DNA from: Octopus sinensis
Lineage: Eukaryota
DNA: 64,000 bases
Direction: 5' to 3'
Assembly: GCF_006345805.1 (NCBI RefSeq)
Contig: NC_043010.1
Location: forward strand, 42,594,001-42,658,000
Numbering within the stretch: the stretch's first letter is position 1; every line of letters starts with the position of its first letter. Below, piece after piece: positions 24,701 to 35,327 of the stretch. The notes under the pieces are model-generated. The model did no database searches and was not told the DNA's origin. It saw only the letters and a list, made by a program, of their open reading frames with translations. Made by a program: the position numbers and the translations under genes.

Positions 24701-27700
24701 TCACATCGACAACCAGTGATTGAAACACGCTGATGACGGGTCAATACCCAGAAATTCGGCTTTATATGTATCATGTCAGGTTGGAGATGGGAAGGATGGC
24801 TTCCCTTGCAAATACTGATAGGGCACAGAAAGTGTGTCAATAGCCAGCTAGAGGAGGTGTCCTCCTGGGGCTACAAGCTACAGTAGCATCCACCCTTAAG
24901 GGTTAGACACATTTAAGTGGCAAATATACTTCACAATATATATATATATATATATATATATATATATATATATATATATATATAAGAATTTTTAGCGTAA
25001 TAAAATAAAAAACCAAGGCTGTGTAGATATCAGAGCAGGGGAATATATATAGTTGTATATATGAATATATATATGTACATATGTATATATGTGTGTGTAT
25101 GTATGTATATAGATGTATGTGTATGTATGTGTGTATAAATGTGTGTACGTAAGAGTACATTTTTATGTATATGTATGTTTTATTATTATACATATACGAT
25201 GATATATTATTATATCTCCTTTTATCTTTCTACACAAATAGATGTATGCGAGTATATAATGATCTGTCCCCAGCCTTAGATTTATATTATCTTCTAATGA
25301 GTTTTGTGCCCCTCCCTCCGCCCCACAGGAACTCTGTTGTCTAGCTATTTATAGATTAAAATAAAATAAAATAACATCTAATTTATAATTTTTTTTCATG
25401 ATGTAGAATGCAATATACACTTTTCATCTATTCCACATTCATCCTCCCACTATAATTACTTTCCCCTCTCCTCCCCATTCCAGTCACCTAAAGGCGTCCT
25501 CTTTATAGTGTACAAACAAACTAGAGGAGTGTAATCACTCTCTGACCAAATTTCATTGGAGAGACTTGAATGGCACTTTCTTGGGAATTTAAGATGTTTT
25601 GAAATGTTTAATTCAGACGTATATTCACCTGATGAAAACGTTTTTTTTCACATGATGCAATAATTCTATTCATCAATAAAAAAATATATCTGAAATAGCT
25701 GTAGTGAGTGGACCACAATCTATCTGTTGCTATTTGTTTATATATCATTGACAGAGCGGCTAACCGGCTTCTGTGCCAGTGGCACATAAAAGACACCATT
25801 CGAGTGTGATCGTTACCAGCATCGCCTTACTGGCACTCGAGCCCGTTGCTAGTAGGGTGTTAAGAGTACCATCTGAGCATGATCATTGCCAGAGTGGCTA
25901 ACTGGCCTCCAGGCCGGTGGCACGTAAAAGGCACCATTCAAGCATGATCGTTACCAGCATCGCCTTACTGGCACCTGTGCCGGTGGCATGTGTAAAAGAT
26001 TCGAGCAAGGTCATTGCCAGTACCACCTGACTGGCCCCGTGCTGGTGGCATGTAAAAGCACCCACTACACTCTCGGAGTGGTTGGCGTTAGGAAGGGCAT
26101 CCAGCTGTAGAAACTCTACCAGATCAAGATTGAAGCCTGGTGCAGCCATCTGGTTTCACCAGCCCTCAGTCAAATCGTTCAACCCATGCTAGCATGGAAA
26201 GCAGACGTTAAACGATGATGATGATATATATACACACAAAATGAGAGTGTGACTGTGAGTGTGTGTGTGTGTGTGTGTGTGTGGTGTGTGTGTGTGTGTG
26301 TGTGTGTGTGTGTGTGTCACTGTACACACTGAATATGAAAATCATTGGCACTCCCTCATCACCTCCACCATTAGAAATTAACTGAACCAATGATTGCCAC
26401 AGTGGAAAACTGTAATCAACAACACCATTGTTTACAAAATATGACATACAATATTAATGAGCTGATGTATCAATATGAGACTCTAGCTAACAAAATCTTC
26501 CTTATTTCAGTAAGACCACATTTTATATATTGCTTCAGCATTGCGTTTGGTGATTAAATATATTTACTAATACTCTACACATATCAATCTTTGTAATTAA
26601 TTGATTTCTCTACAGATGGATATCTCCACCAGTCACAGTCAGCCCTTTCTATTCACCAATTAGAAATGAGCTTTTCTTCCCTATGGCGCTTTTTCATCTA
26701 CCATTTTTCTCGGAAGAAGGGCCACAGTAAGTTACTCTTTTACTCTTTTTCTCTTTTACTTGTTTCAGTCATTCGACTGTGGCCATGCTGGAGCATCGCC
26801 TTTAGTCGAGCAAATCGACCCCGGGACTTATTCTTTGTAAGCCCAGTACTTATTCTATCGGTCTCTTTTGCCGAACCGCTAAGTGACGGGGACGTAAACA
26901 CACCAGCATTGGTTGTCAAGCAATGCTAGGGGGACAAACACAGACACACAAACATACACACACACACATACTTATATATATACATATATACGACAGGCTT
27001 CTTTCAGTTTCCGTCTACCAAATCCACTCACAAGGCATTGGTCGGCCCGGGGCTATAGCAGAAGACACTTGCCCAAGATGCCACGCAGTGGGACTGAACC
27101 CGGAACCATGTGGTTGGTTAGCAAGCTACTTACCACACAGCCACATTTTTTTTTTTTTTATGTCTGTAAACATCTATTGACTTTGTTGTTGTTAGCAGTT
27201 ATGTTAATTCTACAGTTCAGCTCAGAGGAACTATTTGAAAATGAAATCCCAATAATAAAGTTATTTCATAAAAGTCACAGAAGACACCAACTTATCTGTG
27301 GGAACCACTTCAAATCACTGATACTGACCTTGGGCCATAGCAATTCCTATTATCTTCTGCCCTGAAGCAATTAAGTGAATCACGGAGGCGATATCCTGCT
27401 GCAGAATTGAAATATTGTGTAGTTAATGTGTAGTTCTGTCTCTTTCTCTCACACTATCTTTCCCTTCCTCTCTCTTAATCTCATCACTTCTGTGTGATGT
27501 ATGTGTGATACACACACACACACACACACACACACATATATATATATATATATATACATATATATATACACACATATATATATATACATATATATATATA
27601 TATATATTATATATATATATATATATATATACATATATATATATATATATATATATATATATATATATATATATGTATGTATACATATGTTTATGTATAC

Positions 27701-35327: not shown

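Follow-up and report, generated by a model that had tools for sequence, protein, structure and literature searches.

Does a member of peptidase family M13 that keeps its zinc ligands and general base, but has lost residues on which M13 catalysis relies, still act as a peptidase? The question is raised by a gene in a stretch of 64,000 nucleotides from Octopus sinensis (contig NC_043010.1, positions 42,594,001 to 42,658,000 of the forward strand), referred to here as the window, within which all positions below are counted. An earlier note on this DNA, made from the letters alone, had proposed a folded, zinc-binding and probably selected protein with strongly reduced or re-specified activity. 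Our analyses revealed that five otherwise strongly conserved sites, among them D590 and H711 of the catalytic center, are replaced in both octopus and cuttlefish. Judging from sequence, we lean, by a modest degree, toward the view that the octopus protein is a catalytically crippled, membrane-tethered protein that would bind peptides or other ligands, with a cytoplasmic tail that would serve trafficking or signaling.

The window contains the 3′ two-thirds of one M13 gene, namely its last 16 exons (2544–35327, + strand). The gene is already annotated in O. sinensis as LOC115219258, “endothelin-converting enzyme 1-like.” Its nine upstream exons in the window were placed by tblastn with a cuttlefish-type orthologue (P0045), which came from an exhaustive HMMER search, as the query, followed by optimization of the splice boundaries. 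All 16 exons have GT–AG splice sites, and direct reading and spliced translation revealed no stop and no frameshift. The seven C-terminal exons form a continuous frame of 213 residues, with AG/GT boundaries throughout, that ends in KCEVW and a stop codon. A homology search with this 213-residue fragment returned short or partial proteins only and none from a cephalopod; the longer query, the spliced 16-exon translation of 525 residues, gave the octopus match and is 100% identical to Octopus vulgaris QHX41527.1 (P0194, 796 residues). The remaining ∼270 N-terminal residues, comprising alternative N termini, a shared cytoplasmic tail, the transmembrane helix, and the start of the ectodomain, are encoded upstream of the window. 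The C-terminal 213 residues match PF01431 (Peptidase_M13) with an E value of 3.7e-57, human endothelin-converting enzyme 1 (ECE-1; 3dwb) with an E value of 5e-66, and neprilysin with one of ∼1e-55, and full-length P0194 carries both M13 Pfam domains, PF05649 (Peptidase_M13_N, E = 7.8e-67) and PF01431 (E = 7.5e-56).

The octopus gene encodes an M13-family glycoprotein anchored in the membrane in type II orientation. AlphaFold2 modeling of the full protein, using an alignment of 85 sequences, gave a predicted local distance difference test (pLDDT) score of 86.1, mostly above 90 in the ectodomain, and a predicted template modeling (pTM) score of 0.85, and placed the transmembrane helix at residues 72–97. 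In Foldseek comparisons the model showed the two-lobed neprilysin/ECE fold, with target-normalized TM-scores of 0.87 against neprilysin and 0.89 against ECE-1. Thus, a fold like that of these two enzymes is predicted with confidence, as the earlier note had supposed, and five neprilysin disulfide pairs are conserved in the octopus protein. The cytoplasmic tail, as read from the sequence, has an acidic-dileucine-like motif, EENELL, and an acidic Ser/Asp cluster, SESRTTDSDDDD. Isoforms vary only in the first ∼15–40 residues, via alternative first exons. Between octopus and cuttlefish, identity is 98% in the shared cytoplasmic tail (56 residues), 100% in the transmembrane helix, 76% in the N-terminal ectodomain, and 90% in the C-terminal domain, with tail and helix (P0194 residues 18–96) conserved above any ectodomain region.

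Residues are numbered here as in human neprilysin (NEP) unless marked as octopus residues. In the octopus protein, the zinc ligands of the first shell are intact, as are the general base E584 and residues D650, D709, and R717. We scanned the protein systematically against 83 other M13 proteins for sites that carry the same residue in at least 90% of 37 other members of its subfamily, described below, and at least 85% of 46 distant M13s, yet are altered in both octopus and cuttlefish. The scan gave just five such sites. Three are invariant in the other M13s (83 of 83), namely D590, Q624, and H711, which are replaced by Gly, Thr, and Phe at octopus residues 640, 674, and 758, respectively. The fourth is R594 (Arg in 82 of 83), which is replaced by Met at octopus residue 644, and the fifth is P226 (Pro in 76 of 83), replaced by Asp at octopus residue 280. 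Cephalopods also show N542 to Ser and A543 to Pro changes, at octopus residues 592 and 593, and have a histidine at position 710 (octopus His757).

The roles of several of these residues are established. N542 makes hydrogen bonds to the substrate backbone, D590 belongs to an Asp–His–Zn triad, and D709 and H711 stabilize the transition state (PMC7822871). In the bacterial M13 peptidase PepS, the D538N mutant (equivalent to D590) is inactive and the H654A mutant (equivalent to H711) has little activity, with an unchanged circular dichroism spectrum (PMC4701951). With Gly in place of D590, the triad partner of H587, and Phe in place of H711, the octopus protein lacks mechanistic residues expected of a competent M13 peptidase. 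R594 and Q624 are located on the HExxH-helix side of the domain and, together with D590, probably constitute a second shell around the zinc ligand H587. Because all three of these neighbors of the HExxH helix are replaced, zinc affinity may be weakened despite the intact first shell.

Under the four-motif rule (Meyer et al. 2021), the protein has HExxH (HEITH, 28170–28184), ENIAD (in DENIADNGG), and the C-terminal CxxW (CEVW). In place of NAY/FY it has SPFY (26641–26652), as do all cephalopod orthologues, and this substitution puts it in the “neprilysin-like” class under that rule (PMC8223033). The combination of changes is rare. In a census of 295 M13 domains, the zinc or base site (HExxH/E646) is broken in 20, while the only entries that lack both D590 and H711 and keep the zinc ligands and E584 are three from cephalopods; four other domains with an intact zinc site lack one of the two. 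Breakage of HExxH or E646 is therefore the commoner form of M13 degeneration, as the earlier note had stated.

The motifs and codon positions in that note were all borne out by direct reading (VSPFY at 26638–26652, HEITH as above, Gly-Ile at 28191–28196, and Phe at 33923–33925). Its range of 26616–33942 takes in the exons and motifs concerned but stops short of the CEVW end at 35313–35324. Its list of replaced residues was right for D590 and H711 and missed R594M, Q624T, and P226D, which the scan supplied, and its claim of zinc binding is borne out for the first-shell ligands only. W693, which it had assigned to the S2′ subsite, belongs instead to the S1′ pocket (PMC11700742).

Ancestry and Conservation of the Changes

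In a neighbor-joining tree (713 columns, 100 bootstraps), the octopus gene was found inside a mollusc-only M13 subfamily with a bootstrap value of 100, within which cephalopods, gastropods, and bivalves each have a value of 100. Branching within the subfamily mirrors that of the species, suggesting 1:1 orthology. Outside this subfamily, the tree joins canonical mollusc ECE1, such as P0232, to the ECEs of arthropods and vertebrates. The octopus protein thus belongs to a clade separate from the bilaterian ECE/Nep3 orthogroup, and the gene is not an orthologue of vertebrate ECE or NEP. Subfamily membership is evident both from clade position and from the FPxAxFH, AQ[ML][YF]C, and HEITHAF signatures. 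Specifically, a motif census over the closest relatives gave the subfamily signature as FP[IM]A[ML]FH (versus FPAGILQ), HEITHAFD[IFV]xG (versus HExxHxFDDxG), [DE]ENIAD, and AQ[ML][YF]C (versus AQVWC). The octopus protein shares the subfamily signatures, including PGxxR and the NELL/acidic-cluster tail, with proteins from Aplysia (P0058), Haliotis (P0214), Patella (P0196), Crassostrea (P0215), and Mytilus (P0227). Unlike these other members, however, only the cephalopods have the set VSPFY, FGIRGM, and DHF.

This distribution separates old changes from new ones. On the evidence of the alignment, FPMALFH, AQMYC, and the change at D591 are ancestral to the subfamily, including members that keep every catalytic residue, and this ancestral signature implies a remodeled S1′/S2′ region. 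All 37 noncephalopod members keep D590, R594, Q624, and H711. N542 is kept in 14 of 15 gastropod-clade sequences, the exception being Bradybaena (ESTYY), and gives way to Glu or Asp throughout the 22 bivalve-clade sequences (VE[SA]DY, with VD[SA]DY in two), in which the other catalytic residues are all kept. In bivalves, E-[SA]-D (D-[SA]-D in the two exceptions) amounts to a change in the specification of the S2′ backbone-binding motif that has been conserved. Since loss of N542 is recurrent and conserved in the subfamily, it is by itself no sign of inactivation. Of the five replacements listed in the earlier note, those at D590 and H711 are cephalopod-specific, but FPMALFH and AQMYC are ancestral and the loss of N542 is common in the subfamily. 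A histidine at 710 is found alongside H711 (“HH”) in relatives from Dreissena, Apostichopus, and Caligus. An extra Cys pair, at octopus positions 368 and 406, was seen in the three bivalves checked for it (Crassostrea, Mytilus, and Dreissena).

Octopus also has a canonical ECE paralogue (P0339), with the motifs VNAYY, HELTHGFDDQG, GENIAD, AQVWC, NDPHSP, and CEVW, and this paralogue was found in Argonauta and Octopus bimaculoides as well. The retention of a separate canonical ECE means that ECE-type catalysis is covered by another gene. In the literature available to us, we found no paper on the mollusc subfamily or the cephalopod changes, and no biochemically characterized mollusc member.

The altered motif set recurs in the same form in O. 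bimaculoides, Argonauta hians, Acanthosepion pharaonis, and cuttlefish-type transcripts, that is, in five cephalopod taxa sampled through genomes and spliced transcripts, with a single variable position, [KQ] before AR. The SPF/FGI/DHF set, for which the earlier note had raised the question of clade conservation, is therefore fixed in the sampled cephalopods and absent from other subfamily members. The full open reading frame (ORF) of the cuttlefish-type orthologue was recovered on intronless 3–4 kb Logan RNA-seq contigs from six independent SRA runs, namely SRR21372860, SRR6517992, SRR3011300, ERR4031017, SRR9970008, and SRR9970004. Because these contigs are intronless, they represent spliced mRNA, and the cuttlefish orthologue is transcribed; RNA-seq support for the gene model thus comes from this orthologue.

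Substitution patterns indicate constraint. For octopus versus cuttlefish, the nonsynonymous rate (dN) was 0.108, with 0.063 in the C-terminal domain, and the LWL85 ratio to the synonymous rate (dN/dS) was ∼0.07, in a comparison in which dS is saturated (third-position identity 47%) and for which NG86 and YN00 consequently gave no estimate. Between two close cuttlefish-type transcripts there are 25 nucleotide differences but a single amino acid change, corresponding to a dN/dS of 0.01–0.02. There is no acceleration in cephalopods, whose path from the subfamily root is 0.41, compared to 0.47 for gastropods and 0.59 for bivalves. Within the C-terminal domain, octopus and cuttlefish differ at 3 of 86 positions in the motif neighborhoods versus 18 of 127 elsewhere (Fisher p = 0.01), although these segments are fold-core elements, which evolve slowly anyway. 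The altered site has been under strong purifying selection since before the octopus/cuttlefish split. The proposal that the protein is selected and is not a young pseudogene is thus upheld by the dN/dS values (0.01–0.07), the open frame, and the identity of the motifs in five taxa.

Readings of the Altered Site

For the crippled binding protein that we favor, the course of events would be as follows. On the cephalopod stem, N542, A543, D590, R594, Q624, and H711 were lost from an already remodeled mollusc scaffold. Oxyanion stabilization, the support network of H587, and hydrogen bonding to the substrate backbone would have been lost with them, lowering M13 hydrolysis by several orders of magnitude. 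The conserved cleft of the ectodomain would then bind a peptide or other ligand rather than cleave it, and the near-invariant tail (EENELL and the acidic cluster) probably governs trafficking or signaling. Both parts of this reading, that activity is lost and that the protein has a role in binding or trafficking, are inferences. More speculatively, and with odds that we put well below even, the protein might be a zinc-retaining, nonhydrolyzing peptide receptor or chaperone of the cell surface that captures and internalizes a neuropeptide or hormone, its tail serving endocytic trafficking or signaling, or else the first M13 enzyme to work without the thermolysin-type transition-state histidine and the Asp–His–Zn triad.

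Several points weigh against this reading. The retention of E584, the three zinc ligands, D650, D709, and R717 would fit slow or re-specified catalysis equally well, and, in a domain that is 90% identical overall, the retention of those seven residues is not significant in itself (∼0.9^7). NEP mutants at H711, as Dion et al. reportedly found in 1993, lose tens-fold, and not all, of the turnover number (kcat). The coexistence of His710 and H711 in active-looking relatives makes a functional hand-over to His710 conceivable. The one octopus expression value found, “ECE1” at less than 1 count per million (CPM) in the gastric ganglion (PMC5736919), is not assignable to this paralogue.

The strongest competitor, to which we assign a smaller though substantial share of the probability, is a working but rewired metallopeptidase. 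In such an enzyme the zinc shell and E584 would carry out hydrolysis, His710 (octopus His757) or the subfamily-specific Tyr693 (octopus Tyr740) would stabilize the oxyanion, and the Ser, Pro, and Phe substitutions, with the altered S1′ pocket, would select a lineage-specific (neuro)peptide. To our knowledge, no M13 enzyme uses a histidine at position 710 or a tyrosine at position 693 in catalysis. Every cephalopod sequence nevertheless has HExxH, E646, D650, D709, and R717, and no part of the ectodomain is more conserved than the active-site neighborhoods. The “HH” of the relatives offers a plausible stepwise route to the shifted histidine, and the loop bearing His757 (residues 756–760), which sits between two helices in the AlphaFold2 model, could be plastic. 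The bivalve proteins, with Glu for N542 yet all else kept, suggest that a different substrate-binding mode is tolerated. A rewired enzyme would, however, have to do without D590, Q624, and H711, which no other M13 in the scan has lost, and without R594, kept in all but one. Losing four residues at once around a single zinc ligand and the oxyanion site would be hard to compensate, and in PepS a single mutation at the equivalent of either D590 or H711 was enough to abolish or nearly abolish activity (PMC4701951).

It is improbable, in our estimation, that the protein is instead a noncatalytic partner or regulator of active M13s, for example through heterodimerization or co-trafficking with the canonical octopus ECE, and not a ligand binder itself. 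A canonical ECE paralogue does coexist with it in octopus, Argonauta, and O. bimaculoides, the extreme conservation of the tail and transmembrane helix suggests protein–protein contacts, and pseudopeptidases often regulate their active relatives (PMC11266112). Conservation of the cleft, however, suggests that this is the surface through which the protein functions, and we found no evidence of interaction. The alignment was also inspected for the ECE-1 dimerization cysteine, and no extra Cys column in common with fish ECE-1 was present, which counts against such a role.

Finally, a decaying pseudogene, or an assembly or exon-choice artifact in which alternative exons or adenosine-to-inosine (A-to-I) editing would supply the canonical residues, has only the unusual residues themselves in its favor and can be set aside almost entirely: neutral decay was rejected given a frame open over 16 exons, a dN/dS of 0.01–0.07, and the same motifs in five taxa; alternative or mutually exclusive canonical exons were rejected since tblastn with eight M13 proteins found nothing beyond the 16 exons in 64 kb, the sole extra match having an E value of 0.37 and containing a stop; and rescue by A-to-I editing was rejected because the codons AGC (Ser), GGC (Gly), and TTT (Phe) are not convertible to Asn, Asp, and His.

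Exons and Surrounding Sequence

The 16 exons in the window are listed in the table. AQ|MYC spans the 33518/33866 junction, and the R717 codon spans the 33942/35228 junction.

Table. Exons of the M13 gene in the window, with the residues and motifs they encode
Exon	Strand	Content	Basis
2544..2639	+	first M13 exon in window, ends LYAQ; starts at ∼residue 272 of 796	tblastn with P0045, splice optimization, acceptor read, P0194 match
4660..4788	+	N-terminal M13 domain, ends TLVQ; skipped in 2023 O. vulgaris models P0195 and P0318	
8577..8648	+	skipped as well in O. vulgaris models P0195 and P0318	tblastn, splice optimization
12041..12189	+	ends NITKAE	tblastn, splice optimization
13533..13618	+		tblastn, splice optimization
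16929..17050	+	ends HDK; conserved Cys460 = NEP C410	tblastn, splice optimization, alignment
18713..18811	+		tblastn, splice optimization
20906..20983	+		tblastn, splice optimization
21659..21762	+		tblastn, splice optimization
26616..26726	+	VSPFY (N542S, A543P) and FPMALFH; octopus = cuttlefish 100%	
28133..28200	+	H583, H587, and base E584 kept; D590 to G (GGC, 28191–28193), D591 to I	
30705..30829	+	R594M, Q624T; conserved Cys670	
30953..31018	+	DENIADNGG; zinc ligand E646 and D650 intact	
33423..33518	+		direct read, spliced translation
33866..33942	+	MYC (V692M, W693Y, subfamily-wide); TDHFAPGKA(R); D709 kept, V710 to H (33920–33922), H711 to F (TTT, 33923–33925)	
35228..35327	+	last exon; completes R717; CEVW 35313–35324, stop TGA 35325–35327	

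Gene models differ in several respects. In Argonauta the gene spans 150 kb. The two 2023 O. vulgaris models that skip exons 4660–4788 and 8577–8648 are CAI9732984.1 (P0195) and CAI9732983.1 (P0318), the latter of which ends in KCELKFLTFHPKL and not KCEVW; they are either minor isoforms or model errors. The O. sinensis RefSeq model XP_029645271.2 (P0314) has 1921 residues, with ∼1150 low-complexity, Ser/Thr/Asn-rich residues ahead of a normal SASNEENELL tail; either the cytoplasmic part has a giant alternative extension or the gene model is a fusion. The cuttlefish-type transcripts P0045 and P0309 carry a 10-residue insert, EKYVRAIYAK (residues 478–487), that is missing from P0311, P0312, and all octopus models. 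The insert looks like an alternatively spliced microexon, and no counterpart was found in octopus intron 17051–18712.

The window is AT-rich animal DNA, full of microsatellites and short interspersed nuclear elements (SINEs). Two introns of the M13 gene contain an inverted SINE-like pair (26956–27144 and 32395–32583; 189 nucleotides, 98% complementary) that brackets exons 11–13, and fuller SINE-like copies seem to span about 26760–27130 and 32390–32760. From its sequence, the pair could fold in the pre-mRNA into long double-stranded RNA, an ADAR-type substrate. At 22900–24300, a long (GT/CA)n-type microsatellite is followed by a CT/polypyrimidine-rich tract, with a local GC skew of +0.32 and spurious long ORFs on both strands. 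Many other intronic TA/CA microsatellite blocks are found, for example, at 27430–27990, 29100–29220, and 29510–29670. Direct repeats 3′ of the gene (37574–37873/38171–38470, 98%; 55186–55434/60628–60876, 97%) are presumably young copies of interspersed repeats. Between 35.4 and 63 kb of the window no protein-coding gene was recognized, and tRNA and Rfam searches of the window gave no matches. On the − strand at 63138–63557, a 139-residue ORF with a partial DDE domain of the mariner-type Transposase_1 family (PF01359, E = 1.7e-18) looks like a transposase remnant.

Place among M13 Homologues

M13 peptidases serve as off switches, or with ECE as an on switch, for neuropeptide and hormone signaling. 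Their noncatalytic homologues are known mainly from large, fast-evolving expansions in Drosophila and nematodes, and their function has been hard to pin down. The phenomenon described here belongs to this known class of M13 nonpeptidase homologues. Like human ECE-1 (3dwb) and NEP (1dmt/6sh1), the octopus protein has the two-domain M13 fold, type II topology, HExxH, ENIAD, and five disulfide pairs, and it resembles ECE-1 in that its C-terminal CxxW is CEVW. Its alternative N-terminal tails also recall ECE-1, the isoforms of which have alternative N-terminal cytoplasmic tails. Unlike both enzymes, it is without N542, D590, R594, Q624, and H711, carries the FPMALFH and AQMYC variants, and belongs to a mollusc-only clade.

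In Drosophila, 21 “neprilysin-like” (Nepl) genes lack at least one of HExxH, ENIAD, CxxW, and NAY/FY, and their products, including Nepl15, Gone early (Goe), and Fra mauro, are expressed, conserved, and predicted to be inactive, with peptide sequestration proposed as a function (PMC8223033, PMC7822871, PMC2259306). Gone early, an M13 pseudopeptidase, is a type II membrane protein (PMC11266112), and the octopus protein shares this topology. Zinc ligands, E584, or both are missing from Nepl15 and Goe, whereas the first shell and the base are both present in the octopus protein. Most Nepls are secreted and arose in lineage-specific tandem expansions; in contrast, the octopus protein is anchored in the membrane and of independent origin, and it is apparently a single-copy orthologue. 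A decoy in the sense of the secreted Drosophila Nepls, one of the roles the earlier note had suggested, is thus at odds with its type II topology and highly conserved tail. The closest mechanistic analogy is with Tma108 (M1) and CPXM1 and Ecm14 (M14), in which the zinc ligands and base are intact, a listed substrate-binding residue is missing or changed, and the protein binds rather than cleaves (PMC11266112, Table 2), but it is an analogy only, as these proteins differ from the octopus protein in both family and fold.

The name assigned automatically to the octopus gene, “endothelin-converting enzyme 1-like,” is a misleading one. In practical terms, the finding is a point of curation and comparative enzymology and not a new kind of system. 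The gene is, nevertheless, a cleaner case than the fast-evolving expansions, being apparently single copy and membrane-anchored, with active-looking gastropod and bivalve relatives as natural controls. It thereby makes tractable the questions of what job the M13 scaffold does after catalysis has been crippled and of how indispensable D590, R594, Q624, and H711 are to the family.

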